Shown here one piece after another: positions 18,087 to 61,300 of a stretch of DNA of 64,000 nucleotides. Source of the DNA: Mobula hypostoma (taxonomy: Eukaryota); the NCBI RefSeq assembly GCF_963921235.1, contig NC_086101.1, positions 53,506,001 through 53,570,000 of the forward strand. The letters run 5' to 3'. The notes under the pieces were generated by a model. That model was given only the letters and a program-made list of their open reading frames with translations. It had not been told where the DNA came from and made no database searches. The translations under genes were made by a program, and so were the position numbers. The stretch's first letter is position 1; the number at the start of each line of letters is the position of its first letter.

Positions 18087-18570
18087 CATCATGTTTGCTG
18101 TTGTGTGCTGGGGCAGCAGGCTGAGGGTAGCAGACACCAACAGAATCAACAACTCATCCGTAAGGCCAGTGATGTTGTGGGGATGGAACTGGACTCTCTG
18201 ACGGTGGTGTCTGAAAAGAGGATGCTGTCTAAGTTGCATGCCATCTTGGTCAATGTCTCCCATCCACTACATAATGTACTGGGTGGGCACAGGAGTACAT
18301 TCAGCCAGAGACTCAATCCACCGAGATGCAGCACAGAGCGTCATAGGAAGTCATTCCTGCCTGTGGCCATCAAACTTTACAACTCCTCCCTTGGAGGGTC
18401 AGACACCCTGAGCCAATAGGCTGATCCTGGACTTATTTCTTAATTTACTGGCATAATTTACATATTACTATTTAACTATTTATGGTTCTATTACTATTTA
18501 TTATTTATGGTGCAACTGTAATGAAAACCAATTCCCCCCGGGATCAATAAAGTATGACTATGACTATGAC
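18087..18570 (+). mobile_element. Young Rex1/Babar-type 3' fragment with (TATGAC)n tail
   Basis: LIRKASDVVGMELDSL...HPLH...TERHRKSFLPVAIKLYNSS; near-identical copy at 54347-54777(-). Confidence 0.9.
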
Positions 18571-18678
18571 AACTTGCTCCACTCCCTGACACTGATCAAA
18601 AATCATTACTCTGGAGGATGAAAACTCTGCCTTTGCTGGAGAGAGTTTTGTGGAGTTTTAATCTCATTATAAAACATA

Positions 18679-21309: not shown

Positions 21310-23095
21310 TATTAAACATATAACGAGTAAAAGAGTGGATATCAGATTGCTGGAAAATAACACTGCAGAAAAATAATGGGAGACAAAAAAAAAACAGGTC
21401 AGTTTAATAAATATCTTAGACCAGTCTTCACTATTGAAGACACTTGCAGAGTGCCAGAAATTTGAGAGTATCAGGCAGTAGAATTGAATGTAGTTGCAAT
21501 TACTAAGGAGAAGGTGCTTGAGAAGCTGGAAGGTCAGAAGGTAGATTAGTGACCTGGACCAGCTGGACTATATCCCAGGGTTCTGAAAGAGGTAGCTGAA
21601 GAGATTCTGGAGGCATTAGTAATGATCTTTCAAGAATCATTCGAGTCTGGAATTGTTCCAGAAGAAAACTGTAAATGTTATTCCACTCTTTAAGAAGGGA
21701 TGGAGGCTGAAGAAAGGAAATTGTAGGTCTATTAGTTTGACTTCTGTGGTTGGGAAGATGTTGGACTTCTGGTAAGATGGCGGCACATTTGAACGCAGCA
21801 GCCTTTCGGGGGCCAACCAAAGATGCACTATCCTTTTCAAAAATGTGTTTTTTAAGATTGTAAGGCTGTACTGGACTCCAAGACGATGGGTACAGCAGTT
21901 GTACTGCACCAGTGATCTGTTTGTTGTTCAGAGAAGCCGGCTGCGGTGTCAGAGGAGCTGGCAGATGGGTCGGGGAAGAAAAAGGCAGCAAACAGGTCAG
22001 AGAAGGAGAAACCATCAGATGGCTGGAGAAGGAGAAACCAGAGGTCTGGTCGGAGAGGATAAAGTCAGCTGATGCATCAGAGAAGGAGAAGCTGGCAGAT
22101 GGGCCGGGACAAGGTTCAGAGGAGCTGACCTGGGTTCAGACCGTGCTGTGGCCTGCTACTCAAAGACATCAGAGTTGGTGCATGAAAGCAGCATGCAGCA
22201 TAACTGTGAGTGACTGTCTTCGACGTTTTTCTTGTGATCACAAGATCCTATTGTACATTGATAATACAAGGCCTGTTTCCTTTGTTTGATGGTGAGACAG
22301 GTGATGAGGAAGTAGCATGGCCTCAGTTGTAGCAAGGACTAGGCCTCAAGACATGGGCTTGCCTGCTGCTGCAGTCCAGATGAGGAGATGCTAGAGCGGT
22401 GTAGCATGGCGTCCGTGCTTGGTTGGGGACTGGCCTATCCTGTCGGTGCTGCCCACTAGTGGTCAATCAGTGGATTGACAGGCTGGTTTGCCTGGAGCTG
22501 TACAATCAATTTGCATGAATGTCAGGGCTTTGGACGATATATGTGTTTTTGTTTCCTCATTCTTTTGAAAGTATGTTATGTGCCTTGGCCTCAGAGGAAT
22601 GCTGTATCATTTGACTGTATCCATGTATAGTTTGAATGATAATTAAACTTCATTTGATTTGATTTGAGTCCATTATTAAGGATGAGATTTCAGGGTACTT
22701 GGGGGCAAATGATAAAATAAGCTAAAGTCTGCATGATTTGCTTAAGGGGAATTCTTGCCTGACAAATCTGTTGGAATTCATTGAGGAATTAGCAGACAGG
22801 ATAGACAAAAAAGAGTCAGTGGATGTTGTTTACTTGGATTTTCAGAAGGCCTTTGACAAAGTGACCACATGGAGCTGCTTAACAAGATAAGCTCCCATGA
22901 TATCATGGGATAGATACTAGCATGGGTAGAAGATTGGCTGAATTGCAGGAGGCAAAGAGTAGAAATAAAGGGAGTCTTTCCAGTTGGCTGCCAGTGACTA
23001 GTGATGCTCTGCATTGGTCAGTGTTAGAACCATTACTTTTCATGTTCTATGTCAATGATTTGGATGATGGAATTGATGGCTTTGTAGCCATTTGT
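21310..23095 (+). mobile_element. CR1 ORF2 fragment, split by a family B insert
   Basis: Collinear with CR1 at 32290-33130; gggaagatgttgga|gtccattattaaggatgag rejoins across 21766-22667; MFYVNDLDDGIDGFV. Confidence 0.9.
21764..22667 (+). mobile_element. Non-coding retroposon family B, copy 1
   Basis: Head GACTTCTGGTAAGATGGCGGC; tail aattaaacttcatttgatttgatttga; end-to-end homology with 57975-58797. Confidence 0.85.
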
Positions 23096-23379
23096 GGTTG
23101 TTTGTTGTGACTCAACTAGCCAATCACAGCCATTCTCCATGAAAGGAATCCACTCTAACATCCCAGTTAAGCCCCATGGCACAGCAGGTGGTGAAGGGGG
23201 CAAGATTATGATGTCTGGAAGCCCCTCAGAATATGTGAGTCCTAGACTGGCCTCTATAGCCACCTGAAAACCAAACAATAGACAACCCCTTTAGAGAAAA
23301 TCATACTCGATTTAAGTGAGTGCACTCCTACTGCTGTTGTTCTGTGTTGAACTAATCTGCACAGTGATCGTTCACAACT

Positions 23380-23826
23380 TTCTAAGTTACAGAGAAAGGT
23401 TGAACAAGTTAGGTCTTTATTCTCTGGAGCATAGAAGGTTGAGGGGAGACTTGACAGAGGTGTTTAAAATTATGAGGGGGATTGATAGAGTTGACGTGGA
23501 TGGGCTTTTTCCATTGAGAATGGGGGAGATTCAAACAAGAGGACATGAGTTGAGAGTTAAAGGGCAAAAGTTTAGGGGTAACATGAGGGGGAACTTCTTT
23601 GCTCAGGGAGTGGTAGCTGCTGGAATGAGCTTCCAGCAGAAGTGGTGCAGGTTCGATGTTGTCGTTTAAAGTTAAATTGGATAGATATATGGACAGGAAA
23701 GGAACGGAGGGTTATGGGCCAAGTGCATAACCCTGAGAGGTGAGAGTAAGAGTTTGGCATGGACTAGAAGGGCCAAGATGGCCTGTTTCCATGCTGTAAT
23801 TTTTATATGGTTATATGGTTATATGG
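23380..23826 (+). mobile_element. CR1 3' end with (TATGGTTA)n tail
   Basis: LSYRERLNKLGLYSLEHRRLRGDLTEVFKIMRG...TRGHELRV. Confidence 0.92.
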
Positions 23827-24954
23827 CAATAAACTCGACTTGAGATCCAGAACATGAAACAAACATCTGAAAGTGGAAACCTGAGCTTGGATGGGCAGAA
23901 GTGCTGAGCACAGAAAATTTAGTTTAGAAGAACAGAAGTGCTTGGAAGAAGGTGGAAAGTTGGAGGCCATTGAGGCTCAATAAATGAACACTACAACTAA
24001 ACTGACTCTCAAACATTCTCAATAACCCTTTGTCCCTACTTTCAGCAGGCAAAGGCAAGGAGAAACCTGTTCCTTGTCAGAGCTGGCACTGCTGCCTCTG
24101 ACTTATGGGAACTGCCATGTGCATTGATCCTCATATAAAACCGTGAACTGATGCAGTTAATTAAAGGACTATTGACAGAGCCCATTTGCTGGACTGTTAG
24201 CAATGAAGTCAGCCACCTGAATAAACAGGAATGCTCTGTGTGTATAGAAGTTACCCACAACTGACACTGTTGCCTCCCTCAATATAGTCTTTCACAGCAA
24301 TTTATTTCCTTCTGCATGTTTTCACAACCATTGCTGCTGCTGCTACTGTCGGATTCATCAGCTGCCAGTCATATTTCTATGAACCAGAAAGAGACTCTTC
24401 AATTATAATTCCCATCGTGTGACTTTGCCCACATAATCCAATGACTGGATGCATATTCACAATGTAAAGCTGCTTTGGTTAATACACGAGACCTGACTTC
24501 ATTAGATTTAAATCTATCAGCGCTGGCAGGCAGTGTTCCTCCAAAGGTTCAGGAGTTTGCCATGAAATCTTCTTTATAATTGTGTGCAGTCATGCTTGTG
24601 TCAAATCTGCATCAGTGTTCCCAATTAGAATTTTACCTGCAATGGAGATGGTTGACTTGGAAACGTCTGATTCTTTGGCAACACTCCACGAGAGACATTC
24701 AACATCTTAAATAAAACCAGTAAATGCTGAATCTGATCTGTATGTCAGACAGCATCGGTACACAGAGGAACAGAATCAAGATTAAAGAGTCAAATTGATT
24801 TTTCACATGCACATTGTTTACAATATTTTGTATGGTTCTGCTCTAAACTGAAACTGTCAGGACTGGAAAGTTATATCATCTCTAGATTTGATCAATACTG
24901 ATCTTTACTTCTTTTATTGCTGGTTACACATAGTGTTAAAAAGTATTATTATTT

Positions 24955-30737: not shown

Positions 30738-31850
30738 ATGTCAAGTCAAGTCAAGTCAAGTCAAGTTTGTTATCATTTCGACCATAAACTGCTGGTACGG
30801 TACACAGTAAAAATCAAGCAAAGTTCCTCCAGGACCATGGTGCTACACGAAACAACACAACACTACACTAGTCTATGTGAGACAGCATAAGGCTACACTA
30901 GACTACGTAAAACAACATAAAAACTGCACTAGAATACAGACCTGCACAGGACTACATAAAGTGCACAAAACACTGCAGGGCAGTACAATAAATAATAAAC
31001 AAGACAATAGGCACAGTAGAGGACAAGTTACAATATAATAATAAATGATGTAGATGTCAGTCAAGATTCTGGTATTAAGGAGTCTGATAGCTTGCGGGAA
31101 GAAACTGTTGCACAGTCTTGTCGTGAGAGCCCGAATGCTTTGGTACATTTTGCCAGATGGCAGGAGGGAGAAGAGTTTGTATGAGGGGTGTGTGGGGTCC
31201 TTCACAATACTATTTGCTTTACGGGTGCAGCGTGTGGGGTATATGTCTGGAACAGTGGGAAGAGAGACCCCGATGATCTTCTCAGCTGACCTCACTATCC
31301 GCTGCAGGGTCTTGCGATCCGAGAAAGTGCAATTCCCGAACCAGGCAGTGATGAAGCTGCTCAGGATGCTCTCAATACATCCTCTGTAGAATGTGGTGAG
31401 GATGGGGGGTTGGAGATGGACTTTTCTCAGCCTTTGCAAAAAGTAGAGACGCTGCTGGGCTTTCTTGGCTATGGAGCTGGTGTTGAGGGACCAGGTGAGA
31501 TTCTCTGCCAGGTGAACACCAAGAACTTCGGTGCTCTTAACGATCTTTACAGAGGAGCCGTCAATGTTCAACGGAGAGTGGTCGCTCTGTACTCTCCTGA
31601 AGTCAACAACCATCTTTTGTTTTGTTCAGATTCAGAGACAGGTTGTTGGCTCTGCACCAGTCTGTTAGCCGCTGCACCTCCTCTCTGAATGCTGACTCGT
31701 CATTCTTGCTGATGAGACCCACAACAGTCGTGTCATTGGCAAACGATGATGTGATTTGAGCTGTGTATTGCTGCAGAGTCGTGGGTCAGCAGAATGAACA
31801 GCAGTGGACTGAGCACACAGACCTGGGGGGCCCCTGTGCTCAGTGTGACA
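30738..31850 (-). mobile_element. Rex1/Babar RT-to-tail fragment with (ACTTG)n tail
   Basis: ORF 30903..31613 (MVVDFRR...[12 protein letters not shown]...[12 protein letters not shown]...NSFFPQAIRLLN); same subfamily as 47772-50708. Confidence 0.95.
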
Positions 31851-31854
31851 GTCC

Positions 31855-34070
31855 CACTCCTTCCCTCCATCTCTTTAAGTTTGAGGAGAAGGTAAGGTTA
31901 GTATTATAGTATTGCAGTGGAGTAAAAGGAAAGAGAAAGGAGCTGCCCCATATTGATTGGAAGGGGACACTGGCAGTGATGATGACAGAGCAGCAATGGC
32001 TGGAATTCCTGGGTGCAATGCGGAAGGTGAAGGATAGATCCCAAAGATGAAGGAGTATTCTCAAGGGAAGGTGAGGTAACTGTGGCTGACAAGGGATGTC
32101 AAAGACAGCAGAAAAGCAGAAGAGAGGGCATATAATACAACAAAGGATGATAGGAAGTTAGAGAACTGGGAAGCAATTAAAAACCAACAGAAGGCAATTT
32201 AAAAAACCATAAGGAGAGAAAAGATGACATATGAAGGTAAATTTGCTAATAATACAAAAGAGGATACCAAAAGTTTTTTCAGATATATAAAAAAGTAAAA
32301 AAGAGGGGAGTGAATATTAGACCACTGGAAAATACCTCTATAGAGATAGTAATGGGAAATGAAGAAATGGTGAACAAACTTAATAAATATTTTGTGCCAA
32401 TCTTCGTTGTGGAAGACACTAGCAGTATATCAGAAATTTGAGAATGCCAGGGGGCTGAAGTGAGAGTAATTGCTATTACTAAGGAGAAGGTACTTGGGAA
32501 GATGAAAGGTCTGAAGTTTTGATAAGTCAGCTGGACCAGATGGACTACACCCCAGGATTCTGAAAGAGGTAGCTGAAGAGATTGTGGAGGCATTTCAAGA
32601 ATCACTAGATTCTTGGTATGTATGGTTCCGGAGGACTGGAAAATTGCAAATGTCACTTCAGTCTTCAAGAAGGGAGGGAGGCAGGAGAAGGGAAATTATA
32701 GGTCACTCAGCCTGAATTCAGTGGTTGGGAAGATGTTGGAGTCCATTATTAAGGATGAGGTTTTGGGGTAATTGGAGGCACATGATAAAATAGGCCAAAG
32801 TCAGCATGGTTTCCTTATGGGGAAATCTTGCCTGACGAACTTGTTGGAATTCTTTGAGGAAACAACCAGCCTTTGAAATGGTGCTGCACATGAGACTGCT
32901 TTAACAAGAAAAGAGAGAAAAGAGCCAAAGCATCCGAAGAAAGTTACTACTATGGCTAGATGATTGGCTGACTGGCCAGAGGCAAAGAATGGGAATAAAG
33001 GAGGCCTTTTCTAAATGGCTGCCAGTGACTAGTGGTGTTATGCAGGGGTCAGTGTTGGGACCGTTTCTTATCATGTTATATGTGAATGATTTAGATGACG
33101 GAGTTGTTGGCTATATGGCCAAGTTTGCAGACGATACTAAGATACATAGGTGAATGGGCAGGTAGTGTTGAGGAAGCAGTGAGTCTACATAATGATTTAG
33201 ACAGATTAGCAGAATGGGCAAGGGAGAGGGAGATGGAATATTGTGTAAGGAAGTGTATGGTCATGGTCATGCATTTTGGTAGAAGGAATAAAGGCATAGA
33301 CTATTTTCAAAATGGGGAGAAAATTCGAAAATCTGAGGTGCAAATGGACCTGGGAATCCTTGTGAAGAATTCCCTAAAGGTTAACTTGCAGATTAAGTCA
33401 GTGGTGAGGAAGACCAATGCGTTGTTAGTGTTCATTTCAAGAGTACTAGAACATAAAGACAAAGATGTGATGCTGAAGCTTTATTAGTTAGACCACACTT
33501 GGCGAATCTTGGAGTATTGTGAGCAGTTTTGGGCCATTTATCTGAAAAAAAAGAAGTGCTGTCATTGGCGGCGTTCCAGAGAGTGTTCACAGGAATGTAT
33601 CTGGGAATGAAAGGGTTAATGTATGAGGAGCATTTGATGGCTTTGGGTCTATATTCGCTAGAGTTTAAAAGAACAAAGGGTGATCTCATTACAAGTTATC
33701 AAAATATTGAAAGGCCTAGATGTGGAGATGATGTTTCCGTTAGTCGGGGAGTCTAGAACCAGAGGTCACAGCCTCAGAATAGAGGGATGTCCATTTAGAA
33801 CAGAGATGAGGAGGAATTTCTTTAGCCAGAGGGTAGTGAATTGGTGGAATTTATTGCTACAGATGGCTGTGGAGTCCATGTCATTGGGTATATTTAAAGT
33901 GCAGCTTGATAGGTTATTGACTAGTAAGAGTGTCAAAGGTTATGGGGAGAAGGCAAGAGAATGGGGTTGCCAAGGATAATAAATCAACCATGATGGAATA
34001 GCGGAGCAGACTTGATGGGCCGATGGTCTAATTCTGCTTCTACGTCTTCAGGTTTTATGGTATTATGGTC
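31855..34070 (+). mobile_element. CR1 ORF2 long decayed fragment with 3' tail
   Basis: NYRSLSLNSVVGKMLESII, QHGFLMGKSCLTNL, QGSVLGP, KFADDTK, RRNFFSQRVVNWWN. Confidence 0.93.
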
Positions 34071-38200: not shown

Positions 38201-40765
38201 AAAACTACCTGCCCCTCCACCTATCTTCATATTGTCTGCAAACTTTGCAACAAAGCCATTAATTCCATCATCCAAATCATTGACATATAACGTAAAAAGA
38301 ATCAGTCCCGAGACAGACTCTATGGAACATCACTAGTCACTGGCAGCCAAACAGAAAGGGCTCCCTTTATTCCCGCTCTTTGCCTCATACCAGTCAGCCA
38401 CTGTGTTATCCATACTAGAGTCTTTCTTGCAATACCAAGAGCTTATAGTTTGTTAAGCAGACACCTGTGTGACACCTTGTCAAAGGCTTTCTGAAAATCC
38501 AGGTACACATCATTAACCAATTCTCCTTTGTCTATCCTTCTTGTTTTTTCTTCAAAGGATTCCAACAGATTTGTCAGGTAAAAATTTCCCTTGATGAAAC
38601 CATGTTAACTATAGCTTCTTTTATCCTGTGCCTTCAAGTACCCTAAGACCTTGTCCTTAATGATGGACTCCAAAATCTTCCCAACCAGTGAGGTCAGACT
38701 AAATGGCCTATATTTTCCTTTCTTCTGCCCCTTCCTTTCTTGAAGAGTGGAGTGACATTTGCAAATTTCCGGTCTTCTGTAACCATTCCAGAATCTAATC
38801 ATTCTTCAAATATCATTACTAATGCCTCAATGATCTCCTCAGCCAGCTCTTTCAGAGCTCTGGGGTGTACACAATCTGGTCCAGGTGACATATTTACCTT
38901 TCAATTTCCCAAGAACCTTCTCTAATAATGGTAACTTCACACACTTCATGCCCCCTGACACCTAGAGCTTCCACCATACTGCTGGTGTCTTCCACAGTGA
39001 AGACTGATGCAAAATACTTATTCAGTTTGTCTGCCATTTCCTTGTCCGCCATTACTACTTCTCCAGCATTGTTTTCCAGTGGTCTGACATCCACTCTCAC
39101 CTCTCTTTTACACTTCATGTATCTGAAGAAACTTTTGGTATCCTCTTTAATATTATTGGCTAACTTACGTTCGTATTCCATCTTTACCTTCTTTGTGACT
39201 TTTTAGTTGCCTTCTGTTGGTTTTTAAAAGCTTCCCAATCCTCTAACTTTCCACAGATTTTTGCTCTATTATATAGCCTCTTTTTGGGTTTTATATTGTC
39301 TCTGTTTAATTTTGTTAGCCACGGTTCTGTCATCTTTCTTCAGCATACTACTTCCTCTTTGGGATGTATATATCCTGTGCCTTCCAAATTGCTTCCAGAA
39401 ATTCCAGCCACAGCTGCACTGCCATCATCCATGCCAGTGTTCTTTTCCAATCAATTCTGGCCAACTCTCCTTTCACGCCTCTGCAATTCCCTTTACTCCA
39501 CTGTAATACTAATACATCTGACTTTAGCTTCCCCTTCCCAAATTTCAGGGTGAATTCAATCATATTATGATCATTTTTCCCTAAGCATTTTTACCTTAAG
39601 CTCTCAAATTAATTCTGGTTTATTGCCAGATATCCAATCCAGAATAGCAGATCCGCTAGTGGGCTCAACCATGAGCTGCTCTAAAAAGCCATCTGGTAGG
39701 CAATCTAGAAATTCTCCCTCTTGGAATCTAGCACCAATCTGATTTTCCCAATCTACTTGCATATTGAAGTCCCCGTGACTATTGTAACATTCCCCTTTTG
39801 GCATGCATTTTCTATCTCCCATTGTGATTTGTAGACCACATCCTGGGAGGCAACATACCATCCATGAACCTTGTTCTCATGCACAGAAGCTTCTGTCTGT
39901 TCCCCTAACTAATGAATCCCCTATCCCACAGCATGCCTCTTCTCACCCCTTTTCCTCTGAGTAACACAACTGGAATCAGTGCCAGAGACAAGACCACTGT
40001 GACTTTCCTCTGTTAGGTCAACCACCCCGCCTCCCAACAATATCCAAAGTGATATACCTGTCTTTGAGGGGGATGGCCACAGGGGTACTCCATGCTGGCT
40101 TCATAACCCAGTTTCCTGTGTCCTGCACCTTGCATCTAACTTCCTCTCTATATGTCACCCCCTCAGCCTCCCAATTGATCCAGAGTTCATCCAGTTCCAG
40201 ATCCAACTCCTTAACACAGTTTGTTGGAAGATGCAGTTGGATGCACTTCTCGCAGTTGTAGTCATCAGGGACACCGGCTGTCTCTCTGCCTTTCCGCATC
40301 CCGCAAGAAGAACATTTCAGTATCCTGCCTGACATCTCTACTGTCCCAGATGAACAGATATAAAGGGAAGAAGAAAAAAAATTAACCTCGAGCTTTCCTT
40401 TGCTTTCTCCGACTGAATCCTCTCTTCGCTGAAACGTTGAAGAGCTAAAGCTTCAAGTTCACTAGTCTGACTCTGTACATTTAGACAGCAGCTACTACAC
40501 TTGCCCATGCCTCCCTTTAATTCGCTCTTCCTAATCAATCCCAAGTGCAAATTGGTTGCTAGTCAAAGTTCTATTATGTTGCAGTGACCTGCTGCTCCCT
40601 TTTCTACACGGGCAGTGGACCTGAGTTAAACCACTCCCCCCCCCCCCCGCCCAAACTTCCAATGTACAGAATGGACGCTGGTCAAAGCTCTGCTATGCAG
40701 CAGTGACCCACTGCTCCATTTACTACTCAGGGAGTGGACCTTAGTGAAATCTTCTCCTCTCAAAT
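35210..40765 (-). mobile_element. Near full-length CR1 (5' UTR, ORF1, ORF2, tail), internally deleted and split by Gypsy
   Basis: ORF1 MSGRILKCSSCGM...YNCEKCIQL...LELDEL and IGDSLVRGTD (esterase start); ORF2 GDFN, MEYERKLANNIKEDTKSFFRY, RRNFFSQRVVILWNSLP. Confidence 0.92.
35701..37812 (+). mobile_element. Internally deleted Gypsy LTR retrotransposon
   Basis: LTRs 35701-35936 and 37634-37812 (TGTAAT...ACA), PBS-like aaatagcgaccagtatg, PPT aaagggacaggagc; RNase H end YDIEFKGTKQHSNIAGLSHLP; integrase VHIDFAGPF, SKWPE, GLPEQIVSDN, APYHPATNGLAERF. Confidence 0.93.
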
Positions 40766-44247: not shown

Positions 44248-45078
44248 TTTCAAAGGTTCAAAGGTTTAAAGGTACAGTTAATGTCAGAGAAATGTATACA
44301 ATATACATACTGAAATTCTTTTTCTTCGCAAACATTATTGAAAACAGAGAAGTACCCCGAAGAATGAATGACAGTTAAATGTTAGTACCTCAAAGCCCCC
44401 CCCAGCTCCCCCCTCCCATGCACAAGCAGCAACAAAGCAACTGCCTCCCCCCCCACCAACAAAGCGTGCAGCAAAATATCAATAAAGACACAGACTTGCA
44501 GTAAACCAAAGACTACTCATTCACCTGGTAATTNNNNNNNNNNNNNNNNNNNNNNNNNNNNNNNNNNNNNNNNNNNNNNNNNNNNNNNNNNNNNNNNNNN
44601 NNNNNNNNNNNNNNNNNNNNNNNNNNNNNNNNNNNNNNNNNNNNNNNNNNNNNNNNNNNNNNNNNNNNNNNNNNNNNNNNNNNNATCGCTTCTTCTGAGC
44701 TCTGTGCCCAAAGAAATCGGGTCTCTGGGCACACAGCCAGCAGCCAGCTTGCTGCTTTCGATCTTCCGTCCCCCACGACACACGAATTCCCTGCATCAGC
44801 ACCGACCCTGGGTCCACCCACCTCCAGAGCCACGAACCCCTGGAACCCTGAAGGCGCGCTACGTTTCTAGGCCGCATCCTTGGCATATCGCATAGCAGCC
44901 AGTCGTGACACCCCGAGCGCGGGTCCCATTCCCGCAAAGAACCATAGCCAGCGTGTAATTCAAAAGAACCCTGAAAGGGAAAAATAGAGATATTAAAGAT
45001 AACAATAGAGCTGTTTCCGAAGATGTAAGCAAAGGAGTCACCGTTAGGCGCCATTGTCCTCCTAAGCTTCTCCTCCTC
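44248..45078 (-). mobile_element. Non-coding retroposon family A, copy 1 (spans the gap)
   Basis: Head GGACAATGGCGCCTAAC, (TTTGAACC)n tail, collinear with 57047-57908. Confidence 0.85.
44534..44684. other. Assembly gap (151 N)
   Basis: Directly visible. Confidence 1.
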
Positions 45079-47771: not shown

Positions 47772-50708
47772 AGCAGGCGTCGTGGCACGGAAGCAGCGGC
47801 CTTTCGGATCTGGTGTTACTTTAATTTAATTTTAAAATTTAATTTTAAGACACAATTTTTGATTAGGGCACATGGATAACAGAGTGACTATCTACCATCG
47901 ACAGATACTGCTACAATACAGAGATTGCCCAAAAACAAACCTTCATGAAGGTCTGCAGGTTAAATTACACACCTCAGCTTGCTGAGGGGATCGGGCCTAC
48001 AGTCCTCGGAGTCGCCTGATGCCGGTGGCCGGAGGTGGAGATGTCGTAAGCGGTGTGCGAGGAAGCAGGCAGAAGTCCATGCCAGGCAAAAAGCAAATCA
48101 TAGCCGGCCGGGTCTCCCGTCCATTCTGCTCTCCAGTGTCCGCTCCCCGGACAATAAATTCTACGTCCGACTCCAACGAAATACTCGGTTGGAGTACAGA
48201 GTCTGCTGTGCATATGTTTTCACAGAAACATGGCTCTCCGATGGAATCCCAGACGCCACCATTCAGCTGGATGGGCTCGTCTTGTTTTGAGCAGACAGAG
48301 ATGCAGATCTTTCTGATAAGACTCGCGGTGGTGGCTTGTGAGTTTACATCAATACAGAATGGTTCAAGAACTCTGTGCTGGTTTCCAGATACTGCTCATC
48401 GCTAGAGGAGTTTGTGGCTGTTAGATGCAGACCATTTTATTTACCATAGGAATTCACCACTGTCATAGTCGGTGTCTACATTCCCCCCAGCGCTAATGCT
48501 AAGAAGGTGCTCTGTGAAATGTATGGGGCTATTAGCGAACTGCAGAACGCACACCCTGATGGACTGTTTATTGTTGCCGGAGATTTTAACCACACAAACC
48601 TTAAGTCAGTGCTCCCTAGATTCCATCAGAACGTGGACTTTGCAACGAGAAGGGAGAACACATTGCACCTTGTTTACACAAACATTCCCGACGTGTACCG
48701 GGCGGAGCCCTGCCCCCACCTCGGCTACTCAGATCACATCTCTGTTATGCTAATCCCAGCATACAGACCGCTCGTCAGACACTCCAGACCAGTTCAGAAG
48801 CAGATGAAAACCTGGCCAGAGGGAGCCATCTCTGCTCTTAAAGACTGCTTTGAGCACACTGACTGGCACACGTTCAGGGAGGCTGCAAATGATGGTGACT
48901 CTACCAGCTTAGAGGAGTACACGGCATCAGTGACGAGCTACATCAGCAAGTGCATCGATGACATCACTGTGGCCAAGACCATCACTACACGTGCTAACCA
49001 GAAGCCATGGATGACATCGGAGGTACGTGCACTGCTGAGGACCACTGACTCCATCTTCAGAGCAGGCGACAAAACACCCCTAACAACAGTGAGGGCCAAA
49101 CTGTCCCGGGCCATCAGAGAGGCAAAGCGTGCACATGCTCAGCGGAACCACAGCCACTTCCAGGACGGCAGCGACACACGGCGCATGTGGAAGGGCATTC
49201 AGGACATCACCAACTACAAGACAACACCACCCGCCTGTGCTGGTGATGCCTCCCTCCCAAATGCGGCGAGGAAGACCACCCCTCCTCCAAGTGACCAGGT
49301 GCTGTGTCTTACAGTGACCAATGTGAGGAGAACCCTGTGCAGGGTCAACCCATGGAAGGCTGCTGGACCAGACAACATTCATGACAGAGTTCTTAGAGGA
49401 TGTGCAGACCAGCTAGCAGAGGTTCTCACTAACATCTTCAACATCTCCCTGAGCAGCACCATCGTTCCTATGTGCTTCAAGGCCACCACCATCATCCCCA
49501 TGCCGAAGAAGTCTTCTGTGTCCTGCCACAACGATTACCGTCCCGTTGCACTCACATCCATCATCATGAAGTGTTTCAAGAAACTCGTCATGAGGTACAT
49601 CAAGACCCTGCTGCCCCCCTCAACTGTTCAACAGATGACGCTATTGCCATCACCCTGCACCTGGCCCTAACCCACCTGGACAAAATAGACACGTACGTTT
49701 GAATGCTGTTCATAGACTTCAGCTCAGCATTCAACACAATCATTCCTCAGAAACTGATTGGAAAGCTGAGCCTACTGGGCCTGAACACCTCCCTCTGGAA
49801 CTGGATCCTAGACTTCCTGACTGGGAGACCTCAGTCAGTCCAGACTGGAAGCAGCATCTCCAACATCATCACACTGAGCACGGGGCCCCCCAGGGCTGCG
49901 TGCTCAGCCCACTGCTGTTCACACTGCTGACCCACGACTGTGCTGCAACACACAGCTCGAACCACACCATCAAGTTCGCCAATGACACGACCGTGGTGGG
50001 TCTCATCAGCAAGAACGACGAGTCAGCATTCAGAGAGGAGGTGCAGCGGCTAACGGACTGGTGCAGAGCCAACAACCTGTCTCTGAATGTGAACAAAACA
50101 AAAGAGATGGTTGTTGACTTCAGGAGGACATGGAGCGACCACTCTCCGCTGAACATTGACAACTCCTCCATAGAGGTTGTTAAGAGCACCAAATTTCTTG
50201 GTGTTCACCTGGCAGAGAATCTCACCTGGTCCCTTAACATCAGCTCCATAGCCAAGAAAGTCCAGCAGCGTCTCTACTCTCTGCGAAGGCTAAGGGAATT
50301 CCATCTCCCACTCTCCATCCTCACCACACTCTACAGAGGTTGTATTGAGAGCATCCTGAGCAGCTGCATCACTGCCTGGTTCGGAAATTGCACCATCTTG
50401 GATCGCAAGACCCTGCAGCGGATAGTGAGGTCAGCTGAGGAGATCATCAGGGTCTCTCTTCCCGCCATTACAGACATCTACACCACACGCTGCATCTATA
50501 AAGCAAACAGCATTATGAAGGACCCCACACACCCCTCATAGAAACTCATCTCCCTCCTATCATCTGGCAAAAGGCACCAAAGTATTTGGGCTTTGACGAC
50601 CAGACTATATAACCAGACCAAGCCATCAGACTGCTCAATACCCAGAGCCTGGACTGACACCAACCTTCTGCCCTCTACTGTGCCTATTGTCTTGTTTATT
50701 ATTTATTG
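47772..50708 (+). mobile_element. Near full-length Rex1/Babar LINE (frameshifted)
   Basis: Short 5' UTR, ATG 47872 (MDNRVTIYHRQILL), [67 protein letters not shown]; ORFs 47979, 48507, 49703, 49699. Confidence 0.96.
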
Positions 50709-50815
50709 ATTGTGGGATCTTGCTGTGCATCAACCTGTTTGCTGCACTCCCCACTTGATAGAAATGACTGTCTTTCTAAAGCAAGCAACCAGCTGTGAGG
50801 TGTAAAATGCATAGG
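50709..50815 (+). mobile_element. DeuSINE-like 3' relic
   Basis: ttgtgggatcttgctgtgca...tgctgcactcccc resembles the Deu domain (recalled consensus, not aligned). Confidence 0.5.
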
Positions 50816-54331: not shown

Positions 54332-55145
54332 CTGTTATGCCGCTGGCATAGTCATAGTCATACTTTATCGATCCTGGGGGAAATTGGTTTTCATTACAGT
54401 TGCACCATAAATAATTAAATAGTAATAAAACCATAAATAGTAATATGCAAATTATGCCAAGAAATAAGTCCAGGACCAGCCTATTGGCTCAGGGTGTCTG
54501 ACCCTCCAAGGGAGGAGTTGTAAAGTTTGATGGCCACAGGCAGGAATGACTTCCTATGACGCTCTGTGTTGCATCTCGGTGGAATGAGTCTCTGGCTGAA
54601 TGTACTCCTGTGTCCAACCACTCCATTATGTAGTGGATGGGAGACATTGACCAAGATGGCATGCGACTTGGACAGCATCCTCTTTTCAGACACCACCGTG
54701 AGAGAGTCCAGTTCCATCCCCACAACATCACTGGCCTTATGAATGAGTTTGTTGATTCTGTTGGTGTCTGCTACCCTTAGGTAGGCACCTTTAGGGCAGC
54801 AATAAAGGACCTTCATCTCTGGCTGTTTTCAGGGCTAACATTATCTTGTCAGTAGCTTGTTTTTTATTAGTATCAGTCATGCAAGTTCCGGGTGGAGAAT
54901 CAGGAATACCATCATGCTCAGATGTAGACGGAATTTTTATTGCTGTTTCCCCAACAAATTTAATTTATCGTTCGATTTTGTTAGCCCTGAGCTGAACCTC
55001 CAAACCTGGATGGCCGGTGAACAACTCATATACTGGCCTCTGCCCTTTGACCTGTTTGGTATGGGTGACCCTACCAAGAGGCAAAGTATAATGCCCTGAC
55101 TCCAGCTAATATAGTTCTCCGGGCACACAAGCCTCCAAGTCACAG
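54332..55145 (-). mobile_element. Bipartite RTE-derived element, split by the Rex1 insert
   Basis: Homologous to 27185-27580; tail ttatgccgctggca|...|tttagggcagcaat rejoins. Confidence 0.6.
54347..54777 (-). mobile_element. Young Rex1/Babar-type 3' fragment
   Basis: ORF 54481..54816; (TATGAC)n tail; near-identical to 18120-18570. Confidence 0.9.
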
Positions 55146-57046: not shown

Positions 57047-57908
57047 GAAGAGGCTGAGCAAAGTCAAGATGGCGCTAAATGGCGAGTCCTTTGCTTGCAT
57101 CTTTGGAAACAGCTCTATTTCCATCTTTGATAGCTCTTTTTTTATTTTCCTTTTCAGGTTGTGGGGGTTCTTTTGAAGACCCTGACCTGGAGATACACTC
57201 TGACTTTGGTTCTTCGTGGGCCTCATGACCAGCTGTTTTTTGATATCCCGAGGACGCGGCCTGGAAGGTGAGTGCGCCTTCAGGGTTCCGGAGTTTCGTG
57301 GCTCTGGGGACATGCTGATTCTAGGCCGGTGCCCCTGACTGAAGCGTCACAGGAGAACATGGAACATCGGGAGCAGCCCATTAGCTGCCGGGGGTTGTGA
57401 GTCCAGAGAGCTGCGCCTTTTCGGTGCCGACTCTCCCGGCACAGAGCTCAGAAAAAGCGATGCAATGGACTTTTAATCCTGTAAATCAGCGATTTGTTTG
57501 TTATTTCTCCCCTCTCGCTATGAATTGGGGACATTTTTTTTCCCTTATTAGGGAGAGAGAGAGAGCCTGTGGTATGTCAAATTATTGGGTGAATGAGTAG
57601 TCTTTGGGGTGCTGCAAGTCTGTGTCTTTATTGATGCTTTGTTGCACACTTGAGTGCTCGGTGGAGGGTGCTGATGCTTTTTTGCTGGTGGGAGTGGGGG
57701 TGGGGATGGAGTCATTGCCTGGCTGCTGCTTGAGTGTGGGTTGGGCAGTTGGGGGGTGGGCGGCCTTTGGGGTTCTAATGTTTTAACTGTCCCTCATTCT
57801 TTGGGGCACATCTCTGTTTTCGTGTATGTCTGTGAAGGAAAAGAATTTCAAGATGTATATTGTATACGTTTCTCTGACAATAAATGTACCTATAGAAATG
57901 TATTGAAA
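57047..57908 (+). mobile_element. Non-coding retroposon family A, copy 2
   Basis: Head GTCAAGATGGCGCT; Rex1-type tail gaatttcaagatgtatattgtatacgtttctctgacaataaatgtacc. Confidence 0.85.
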
Positions 57909-57974
57909 AGTGAATGAGATAGAATGTAACAGTCTGGAACCCAAGAGTGTCAAGTACCATGATGGAAGGTTGGA

Positions 57975-58797
57975 ATGATGGCGGTAAAATTGCAGCACGT
58001 TGGAATGCAGCGTCCTCTTGGGGTCCAGCCAAAGAGGCACTCTTCTTTTTAAAAGGTGTTTTTTTATGATTGTAAAACTATACTGTAGTCCAAGAACAAA
58101 ATGTACAGCAGGTTTACCATATCAGCGATCTGTTTGTTGTTCAGAGCTGGTGCTCGTCCAGGAAGAGGAGAAGCCGGCACTCAGCCAGGAGTAGGAGAAA
58201 TTGTTGGTTGGCCGGGAGAAGGTTCTGAGAAGCTGACCTAGGTGCAGACCGTGCTGCTGCCTGCTACTTAAGGACATTGGACTTGATGTGCGAAAGCAGC
58301 ATGCAGTGTAACCGTGAGTTACTGTCTTGGACGTTTCTCTTGCGATCAAAAGATCCTGTTGGACATTGATAATGTGAGATGCCGGGGGTCTGTTTCCCTT
58401 GTTTGGTGGTGAAACAGGCGACGAGGCAGCAGTGTGGCCTCAGTTGTAGCAAGGACTAGGCCTCAAGCAGGCCTGCCTGTTGCAGTCCAGGTGAGATGAC
58501 ACTGGAGGTGGTGTAGTGTGCGTGGTGCCTGTACTCGGTTGGGACCTGGCCTCTCCCATCAGTGCTTCCTTCCAGTGTTTGACAGGCAGAAGCACAGGCT
58601 GGATTGCCCGGAACTGTACTATCAATTAGCATGTCATTCAGAGTTGGACTATACATGTGTTTTCTTGAGTAATGATGTGTGTGTGTTTTTTTTCTCACTC
58701 TCTATTTTGAATGTATATTATGCACCATGGCCTCAGAGGAACACTATCTCATTCGACATATGGTCTGAATGGTAACTAAACTTGATCTGATTTGAAT
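57975..58797 (+). mobile_element. Non-coding retroposon family B, copy 2
   Basis: Head ATGATGGCGG; collinear with 21764-22667; tail aactaaacttgatctgatttga. Confidence 0.85.
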
Positions 58798-61300
58798 AGG
58801 TGTGAAAGAATTGAGTTTGCTAAGGTGGGCAGAATGCTGCTGAGACGCCAACCAGGCAGTCGTGGCACCAGGAATACAATCGCCCAGCACCCGTAGCTGC
58901 CTTCCATACATCAATACAGATGCAGAGGACTACTCCATTGGAGCTGTCCTGGGCCCCAGCAGGACCCAAGGGAGATGATCGTGCTAACACTCGTCCAGCA
59001 GGGAAGCACTCAGGCAGCCTTTAAGGAACAATGAAACCAATTGCACAGGCCATTGGACTGTGGTTGGTATGCCATGGCATGGTGCAGTTTAACTCTGAGG
59101 TCCTGGGACATTGTGGGCCAGCGTTCTGACTTGAATTGGGGACAGTGGTTGGAAGAAATATCGGGTGGGGAGCAGAACCGAGTGACCCAGGTGTTGATGA
59201 ACACCCAAGCCATGTCTGCAGCCGTCGTTGATGTGAGAGAGACAACCTCTGGCCACCCAGTGTTACAGTCCACCATGGTAAGGAGGTGCGTAACACCACG
59301 GGTGGGGAGGACCAGTCAGGTCCACATTCATGCGGTCACTCAGGAACCTCAAACGGTGCCGATGGTACAGCGAACGTGACAGTTAATTTTCACCTGCTGA
59401 CACACAACGCAGGCTGCACTACAGTCTCGCATCTCCTTCCTAAGGATGTGCCACATTAACTTTAAAGCAATCAGTTTCTGTGAAGCCTTCCCACCTCTAT
59501 TCGAGAGGCTGTGAATGGAGGTAAAAACAGTACACCTCCAGTTTGCAGGCACTGTAGGAGCGAGGGCAACCGGTTGGACATCACTCAGGAGAGAATCTCC
59601 TTCATTCCTGAACTTGACGTCAGCCAACTGCAGGCCCATGACTGGTGTTGTGCAAGTCTGGACTCTGGGTGGGAGCTTGGTCAGCTGCCATGTTGGCATA
59701 ATCAACCCTGACGTGTATGGCATCAATGGCAGACCATAAAAGGCAATCATCCTCCACATTACCTTTCCCTTTGATGTGCTGCATGTCAGTCGTAAATCCC
59801 TAATGTAGGCCAGGTGGCGTAGCTTCCGTCCTAACCAAGGTGCCGAACATAAACAAGGACGTAATTCAAAATGCTAAGCTGAATGGGATGAGTTGTTGCT
59901 GATTGACATTTAAAGGCAAAAGAAAGACTTGCAATAGTAAAGGATCTTCTGCAACCACTGGACATCCTGACTAAGCATTGGTTTTGTATATGCTTCTAAA
60001 ATTAATTTCGAAATTTAAATTTAATTAAAATGCACACTGATAGGAGTCGGCGAAACACCTCAACATTATTTGTGTAAAAAAAACACAGCCAACGAGTGCA
60101 GAACAGGATCCTACAAACAGTAATGATGATGAGTAATTCTCCTCATTCTCATTGTGACTTATGGGTGGGGTTTGTGTACTGTGGGGTGGAGGAATGTCGG
60201 TCCTGACATAGTGTGGGCAATATCATCTTGATTTTAAATCACTGAATTTATTACTGGGTTGGGAGTCTCGATACATCATGAACTGATCCAAGGGAAAGCA
60301 ATAAGATCCTTGAAGTTTGTACAAGAGTTTCAACATTCACGTTGGAGCACATCCAGTTACTGGTAATACTGACAAAGGAAAGCAAAGAATACTCATTACA
60401 GCCTGTTTTGGAATTAATTTCCTGATTAAAATGATTTGTGCAAATACAAGCATTATTATGCTAATTAAATCCAAGTACATTGACACAGGAAACCAATAGC
60501 AGCCAAGGCCAAGTATAAGTGGATTTCAGTGGATTTGGACCCCGAGCAATAATTCATTTTAAAGAAACCAAATACAATTTTGCACCACGTTTCAGGTCCC
60601 CAAAGACTTCTCAACCTTTTGATATCCCTGAAGTATAGTACAGAGAAGCCAAGCACTGAGCCTTATGACACAAAGACAATTTCTCACATTATGTGGCTGT
60701 TAACACTACTCATTATTGAGTGCTTTGTAATGATGCATGCTTGTCTTCAATTCATCAGCTCTGGGCTGCTGGCTCACCCATGCTGTTTCATGCTGGTGCA
60801 TTATGATCGCAGTTGGAGATAGCAATCCTTGTGCAGCAGCCCAGGCACGAATGAACTAGGCAACGTTTCCTCCTAAGAAGCAGTGCATGACCCAACTAAT
60901 GATTGTTAAATTTCAGGCAGCTGCCAGCACTTACTCACACAGCAAACACATCAAGCCTCCAGCCGTTAAAGGTACCCCAGCTCAAAGCCACAACGATGCT
61001 TCCTGTGGTCTGACCGGTCTTAGCCTCAGACTGCGAGGCAGCAGAGGGGAGGGAGTGTGTCTCCCCTGCTTTTAGATGGGTTTACTTGTGGGTATGGTCC
61101 ACAGAAGAAGGGGGTCTAGCAAACTACGCTGGCAGGAGATTGCAGAAGTTAGTGCGATATGTGAAGCACTCTGCAATATGGAGGAATGGTAAAGTATGAC
61201 CTCACAAGTTGGATTCAACTGAGAAGCATAACATTTTGAATTACTCTTCAATGCACTGGCTGTCGGAGAATAACACATGACCATGCATACAGCACAGGAA

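Follow-up and report, generated by a model that had tools for sequence, protein, structure and literature searches.

Family B, a non-coding element with two full copies readable in the window (the whole 64-kb stretch of DNA that was analysed), is probably an old, multi-copy retroposon of the non-LTR type that lies outside the strict definition of a SINE and that spread by means of the reverse transcriptase of a Rex1-like LINE. The copies are separate insertions whose 5' ends nearly coincide. They carry the last ~90 nt of the 3' UTR of the LINE, followed by a terminal pentanucleotide repeat of the same kind. The original prediction had described a SINE-like, Pol II-driven parasite of Rex1; the non-coding, non-tRNA nature of the element and its Rex1-type tail stand, whereas the match of its head to Rex1 and the ETS motif do not.

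Two collinear insertions without a Pol III head or coding capacity

The 64-kb window contains two collinear copies of family B, as had been predicted (~820-900 bp each), with a mean column identity of 80% in the MAFFT alignment. By blastn, copy 1 and copy 2 were 73-76% identical, gaps included, over 186 and 625 nt. Copy 1 (21766-22662, + strand; 897 bp) is a complete insertion, the borders of which were taken from insert-free CR1 paralogs and contigs. Its end at 22662 assumes that the final TTTGA repeats the target TTGGA; with this trailing TTTGA (22663-22667), the insert covers 21766-22667 and measures 902 bp. The host is a CR1-like LINE, whose left part (21404-21765, + strand) was recognised by repeat alignments and very high contig depth and whose right part starts again at 22668. 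CR1-like paralogs at 32717-32773 and 38636-38694 (reverse complement) are uninterrupted at the insertion site (..GATGTTGGA|GTCCATT..). Moreover, the sequence ..GTTGGA|GTCCATT.. was intact in many CR1 contigs from three species, in which 21763/21765 was joined straight to 22666/22672. Because both the paralogs and the CR1 contigs read across the empty site, copy 1 is a discrete insertion. The start GACTTC that had been given for this copy was not upheld: since the insert starts at 21766 (CTTCTGG..), the GA of the quoted head is CR1 flank.

Copy 2 (about 57977-58797, + strand) lies in the C-terminal part of a Gypsy-like integrase (58798-59759, - strand), which was recognised by Integrase_H2C2 (E 3.7e-5) and an rve-like translation up to 58798. 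The integrase frame resumes beyond copy 2 (..LSHLF|QPSIMV..), and because it reads on across the element, the insert is fixed at 821 bp, with a junction that is ambiguous by 2-7 nt (left TTGGAAT, right TTTGAAT). The sequence TTGGA is located directly 5' of both copies (21761-21765 and 57970-57974), and TTTGA makes up the final five bases of both (22663-22667 and 58791-58795). With n = 2, this pair reflects either a 5-bp target duplication with a repeated G/T mismatch or a target preference resembling the tail repeat.

Neither tRNA boxes nor a TE-like ORF had been expected, and this was confirmed by ARAGORN, Rfam, the comparison of ORFs and Pfam. No tRNA was called by ARAGORN in the whole window. 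An Rfam search over both copies with E values up to 10 gave a best match at E 0.9, and all matches were far under the gathering scores. A head derived from tRNA, 5S, 7SL, Y, vault, snRNA or HDV-like RNA was considered and rejected, as none of them had an Rfam or ARAGORN match on either copy. The ORFs differ between the two copies, which have none in common, and no ORF of family B matched Pfam; a word search with the single frame that is open in both copies also returned no match.

Additionally, a T6 run at 21848-21853 (+ strand) in copy 1 corresponds to a T7 run at 58059-58065 in copy 2, placed ~85-95 nt from the 5' end in both, and a second conserved run (T5/T8) is found near the tail of both copies. 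Because these conserved T6/T7 and T5/T8 runs would be Pol III terminators, they argue against transcription by Pol III. By definition, a SINE is <700 bp long and has a Pol III promoter inside a head that stems from tRNA, 5S rRNA or 7SL RNA (PMC3531059). Family B has T-runs and no tRNA or Rfam match at its head, and its copies measure 897 bp and about 821 bp. Given its length of 0.82-0.90 kb and the missing Pol III head, it is not a SINE in the sense of SINEBase.

A tail matched by a single Rex1-like 3' end of the window

The 3' part of copy 1 (22575-22662, + strand) ends in (ATTTG)n and matches a LINE end at 30746-30843 (- strand) by both nhmmer and Smith-Waterman alignment; its terminal repeat was called by TRF at 22652-22667. 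The tail of copy 2 (58717-58797, + strand) contributes 37 nt at 81% plus an upstream GCACCATGG box. Eleven Rex1-like 3' ends were located in the window, nine through the C-terminal ..SFFPxAIRLLN motif and two through repeat alignment, and the family B tail resembles just one of them, at 30738-31074 (- strand). Against shuffled sequences, the z values of this match were 3.7 (copy 1) and 5.5 (copy 2), whereas the other ten 3' ends all stayed within +/-1.8 z of the shuffles. In an nhmmer search of the whole window, the two-copy profile found the LINE end at 30746-30843 (- strand) with an E value of 3.9e-5, the only significant non-self match of family B in the window. The alignment comprises 83 profile columns, runs from the GCACCATGG..GAGGAAC box to the terminal repeats and reaches the 3' termini of both elements, which end in pentanucleotide repeats, (ATTTG)n in family B and (CTTGA)n in the LINE. 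With z values of 3.7 and 5.5, an E value of 3.9e-5 and one match among 11 ends, the predicted link between the tail and 30738-30860 (- strand) is well borne out. Family B thus has its 3' end in common with a LINE up to the terminus, followed by short tandem repeats, which is what distinguishes stringent pairs; its 3' part comes from the 3' end of a LINE, as in Bov-A-type elements.

The matching LINE (30738-31869, - strand) is Rex1-like and 5'-truncated. Its 3' UTR is ~330 nt long, of which only the final ~90-100 nt match family B; together with (CTTGA)n, they form the counterpart of the family B tail. This LINE was compared with the 3' part of a long Rex1-like element and was 78% alike at the amino acid level (RT/C-terminal) and 87% at the nucleotide level. 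The long element (47775-50710, + strand) has a 5' UTR of ~245 nt and an endonuclease-RT ORF with stops and an RVT_1 match; its own 3' end is missing after about 50710, and its 5' border is approximate. The clade name Rex1 is the label of the original prediction, and the features seen here are RVT_1, PF09004 and the C-terminal ..SFFPxAIRLLN motif. PF09004 (ALKBH8_N) matched just after the Rex1-like RT at 49699-50538 (+ strand) and 31182-31619 (- strand), with E values of 1e-15 to 1e-20; a LINE-derived segment is evidently part of this Pfam family.

Another Rex1-like LINE is represented by two young, 5'-truncated 3' ends, at 18121-18571 (+ strand) and 54344-54780 (- strand). Their identity is 92%, rising to 96% in the best block of 291 nt; they end in (ATGACT)n and share the motif ..RKSFLPVAIKLYN at the C terminus. 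The family B tail was also folded as RNA: the consensus energy over three sequences was -0.6 kcal/mol, which is not convincing, and a possible ACCAU/AUGGU stem is common to copy 2 and the LINE.

Family B is multi-copy in three ray species and has a conserved central block

All runs were searched as Logan contigs, the summed depth of which is a rough proxy for copy number only. The single-copy flank in run X1 had a depth of about 14.5. Specifically, the summed depth was 212 (15x single copy) in bin 21872-22002, 694 (48x) in bin 22003-22133, 6569 (450x) in bin 22134-22264, 12848 (890x) in bin 22265-22395, 664 (46x) in bin 22396-22526 and 18784 (1300x) in bin 22527-22657. When copy number is viewed as for a SINE, these rough contig depths put the central block and the tail at ~450-1300x single copy and the 5' third at 15-50x. 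The depth profile was similar in runs X5 and X9, and distinct contigs numbered 81 at 22199, 31 at 22570 and 7-8 near 21905. Family B is multi-copy in at least three ray species; by contig depth and by distinct contigs, it is not confined to the two copies of the window, a possibility that had been set against the original prediction.

A central block (22181-22362, + strand) is far commoner and better conserved than the rest of family B, with a summed depth of 450-890 times single copy. Unique contigs of runs X1 and X5 stop exactly on both of its sides, so that the block must have long exact words in common with many other copies. The identity between copy 1 and copy 2 is highest in bin 22134-22264 (83%, vs 30-72% elsewhere), and the uneven depth profile is partly due to how well the two copies agree. 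The repeat blocks D9 and D17 (22102-22350) are 84-88% alike. The central block had no Rfam match and no match to family C, the second retroposon family of the window, or to Rex1 in the window, and a 22-mer from it had no match in a metagenome scan. Its predicted RNA structure (z -1.5 and -1.2) was not convincing. The block may be a core module that is common to other families.

Upstream of it lies a purine-rich, GGAGAA-type region (21935-22110, + strand) with an internal duplication (21952-21974 and 22086-22108, 91%), which is ~95 nt shorter in copy 2. Contigs from other copies contain back-joints in this region (22096>22021 and 22103>21993). GGAGAA repeats of variable copy number had been proposed here; the length does vary, between the two copies and among others, whereas TRF called no tandem repeat in the region.

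Several observations bear on the age of the family. A contig of species B with single-copy depth spans 21736-22184 with 10 differences; it includes 30 flank letters, one letter short of the bridging rule for a spanning junction, and is almost certainly the orthologous insertion. A contig of species C over 21902-22152 showed 7% divergence, like the unique flank. Mobulid genomes measure 3.5-4.0 Gb, and the split between two mobulids is reported at about 20 Mya (bioRxiv 10.64898/2026.10.27.761883). Because the copies are 20-27% apart, family B would be far older than the ~20 Mya mobulid split.

In the host of copy 1, the 3' part of the CR1-like LINE (23313-23836) reached a summed depth of 0.6-1.6 million, compared with ~15 for single-copy sequence, which suggests that all three ray species have nearly identical copies by the tens of thousands.

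Origin of the head and the middle region

The original prediction had family B matching both the head and the tail of one Rex1 subfamily, and only the tail match is significant. Read directly, the 15-mer at 21795-21809 (+ strand) does match 47793-47807, in the 5' UTR of the long Rex1-like element, at 14 of 15 positions, whereas its score is no better than the window background: the 85-nt head reached a local Smith-Waterman score of 13.5, vs 14-14.5 at unrelated sites in the window. The two-copy profile gave this match an E value of 27 in the whole-window nhmmer search. Homology of the head to the Rex1 5' UTR is not supported, as Smith-Waterman, nhmmer and a small targeted blastn all gave results at chance level. 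For the middle, the risk named beforehand was an alignment to the UTR of a longer autonomous LINE. In the one Rex1 5' UTR compared, no significant alignment was obtained; the best non-tail match of the nhmmer profile (E 2.3) fell in the Rex1 5' UTR/ORF start (48012-48141), in collinear order, which is suggestive. A targeted blastn also gave a central match between 22321-22402 and 47972-56 with copy 1 only, which was absent with copy 2 alone.

These results bear on whether family B is an internally deleted, non-autonomous LINE, as Bov-A is of Bov-B, with a head and middle that descend, through divergence or expansion, from the 5' UTR of some Rex1 subfamily absent from the window and that are joined to the 3' end of this same LINE. 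We consider this origin unlikely. In both elements the 14/15 match is close to the 5' end, the best non-tail profile match is collinear with the Rex1 5' UTR/ORF start at 48012-48141, and there are listed precedents for such deletions (PMC4494074). However, neither of the two Rex1 5' matches is significant (E 27 and E 2.3), the score of the head is equalled at unrelated sites in the window, and the central match appears with copy 1 and not with copy 2. Moreover, a Rex1 5' UTR of ~245 nt faces ~800 nt of non-tail sequence in family B.

The second feature claimed for the head was a pair of promoter motifs. Copy 1 has a perfect YY1-type box, AAGATGGCGGC, which was read directly at 21774-21784 (+ strand) and lies 9 nt from its 5' end. 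The sequence AANATGGCG occurs only twice in 128 kb (both strands), at 21774 and 57066, and both sites mark the 5' end of a retroposon copy; this count itself is not above chance, and it is the position that carries the signal. Copy 2 begins with ATGATGGCGG. The heads can be aligned about equally well in two ways, one box-to-box with an 11-nt insertion and the other free of indels; in the latter, the copy 2 site homologous to the copy 1 box is AAAATTGCAGC, and the AAT of the copy 2 box belongs to the flank. The box of copy 2 may accordingly differ in position from its counterpart in copy 1, to judge from the indel-free alignment. Thus, the claim of a YY1 motif at the head stands for copy 1, whereas for copy 2 homology depends on the alignment chosen. 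The ETS motif was lost on inspection: ACTTCCGG occurs in neither copy, and a near-match in copy 1 uses two bases of the CR1 flank and is missing from copy 2.

In L1, the YY1 site at the 5' end sets the transcription start, and the transcript thereby takes the promoter along (PMC11602158). The 5' UTRs of human and mouse L1 resemble copy 1 of family B in having a YY1-type box in the first ~20 nt (PMC11602158); the role of YY1 was shown experimentally for L1, whereas in family B (one copy) and in family C the box is a motif with a putative role. The analogy with L1 is a fair one, and by it Pol II could have started at the head of family B. That transcription did start at a promoter in this YY1-type-box head is possible, though we think it less likely than not. 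In a presumed RNA run, the ratio of RNA to DNA contig depth was 0.01-0.04 for family B and about 0.04 for the flanking CR1; with this ratio below that of the flank, the B-like contigs of the run gave no sign of the element's own transcription.

Both copies contain a polypyrimidine tract with CAG followed 170-275 nt on by GTGAGT (21916-21931 and 22206-22211 in copy 1; 58130-58144 and 58314-58319 in copy 2). A family C copy has the same order (57140-57157 and 57268-57273, AAG|GTGAGT). From its sequence, the polypyrimidine-CAG...GTGAGT arrangement looks like an enclosed exon with splice sites.

Such an arrangement also raises the question of a chimeric retrocopy, in which reverse transcription on a Rex1 tail switched template to an unspliced host Pol II transcript (mRNA or lncRNA) and the insertion landed in a transcribable site and became a master copy. 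We regard this as quite improbable. Many housekeeping transcripts typically have the motif AAGATGGCGGC among their first bases, and its presence at the head would fit a host transcript, as would the retention in both copies of polypyrimidine-CAG and then GTGAGT, exon-like with intron borders. Template switching is also the proposed origin of SINEU heads (PMC4494074). On the other side, a conserved ORF is absent from both copies.

A last reading denies a separate family and takes both copies for 5'-truncated remnants of an autonomous LINE with a long 3' UTR. It can be set aside as barely credible: the depth tends to rise toward the 3' end, as it does in truncated LINE copies, but the two independent insertions start ~1-14 nt apart, and in the only matching LINE the 3' UTR measures ~330 nt, just the last ~90-100 nt of which match.

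A retroposon probably copied by the machinery of a Rex1-like LINE

Spread of family B by a Rex1-like LINE is the reading that we prefer, and as judged from the sequences, such a LINE most likely copied it. The pairing rests on one truncated LINE copy, which is 78-87% like the long Rex1-like element. Tail-dependent trans-mobilisation fits because the tail is specific to one Rex1-like subfamily. The protein of the LINE would recognise the tail on the family B RNA and would copy this RNA at a nicked target by target-primed reverse transcription. The RNA itself was presumably made by Pol II, to judge only from the missing Pol III head and the internal T-runs. It would have started at the YY1-box head, as in L1, or at neighbouring promoters. 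Tail-dependent copying is reportedly established for L2-type LINE/SINE pairs, and not for Rex1. In stringent LINE/SINE pairs, the 3' tail is regarded as the handle for trans-mobilisation (PMC3747384).

Among known systems, non-autonomous LINEs that arose by internal deletion are represented by Bov-A/Bov-B, derivatives of L1 and Vingi, and, in trypanosomes, RIME/ingi and NARTc/L1Tc. Family B resembles them in being short and in having neither an ORF nor a Pol III head, as well as in its discrete copies, its defined 5' end and the 3' end of a partner LINE (PMC4494074, PMC3383444). However, the 5' part of these elements is demonstrably parental, whereas that of family B compares with one Rex1 5' UTR at chance level, and some 700 nt of family B match no known source. 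UnaSINE1/UnaL2 and the sea anemone pair SINE2-5_NV/Rex1-24_NV have the last ~100 nt and short repeats in common with their LINEs, as does family B (PMC3747384). Unlike the SINEs of such stringent pairs, family B has no tRNA, 5S or 7SL head, exceeds 700 bp and contains internal T-runs. A survey in 2013 recorded a single Rex1-partnered SINE, which has a tRNA head and comes from a cnidarian (PMC3747384).

SVA of hominids and Sadhu of Arabidopsis are non-coding, LINE-dependent elements of ~0.9-2 kb that are neither SINEs nor deleted LINEs, and they are transcribed by Pol II or have no established promoter (PMC4494074, PMC3287187). They depend on the relaxed, poly(A)-recognising L1, whereas family B carries a specific LINE tail; moreover, SVA, unlike family B, is assembled from known pieces. 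SINEU is like family B in its short length, its LINE tail and its internal T-runs, which exclude Pol III. Its head is recognisable U1/U2 snRNA, whereas the head of family B matches no Rfam family.

A second family and the wider meaning

Family C is another non-coding retroposon family of the window, with an ATGGCG box close to the 5' end. One copy (57055-57908, + strand) precedes copy 2 of family B by 60 nt in the same Gypsy-like integrase; in the other (44250-45075, - strand), a stretch of 150 N (44534-44683) breaks the sequence. The family C tail is of the (ACCTTTGA) type, a different LINE-type tail, and the family is unrelated to family B. Compared with the LINE ends of the window, this tail gave weak matches (E 0.009 and 0.24). 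Homology among the heads of family B, family C and Rex1 was considered and rejected, since the alignment was unconvincing outside ATGGCG. A segment of copy 2 (58121-58141) and one of family C (57485-57505) are alike at 19 of 21 nt (ATCAGCGATYTGTTTGTT..), with a window-wide E value of 0.45, which could be chance or a small shared module.

The genomes of devil rays, and perhaps of all myliobatiforms, might hold a guild of unrelated non-coding retroposon families of 0.6-0.9 kb. Instead of a Pol III head, each would have a YY1 initiator box like that of L1 at its 5' end, serving as a Pol II promoter that travels with the element, and each would be paired by its tail with a stringent LINE partner, Rex1-type or other. 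We think this generalisation somewhat unlikely as it stands. If it is true, such a guild would be the Pol II counterpart of the SINEs, with family B as an old member that has kept a conserved core module in its centre.

Descriptions of LINE-dependent parasites nearly always concern SINEs with Pol III heads or deleted LINEs. The elements that belong to neither class are few (SVA, Sadhu and SINEU), and their mode of transcription is debated. To our knowledge, almost no dependants of Rex1 have been described. Family B adds a vertebrate case, in which a specific Rex1-type tail and a stringent partner go together with the lack of a Pol III head. If the YY1 head is a functional module shared by ray families, a portable Pol II promoter of the L1 style would also occur in short parasites. 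For genome annotation, such families are likely to be found among the "unclassified" repeats of batoids.
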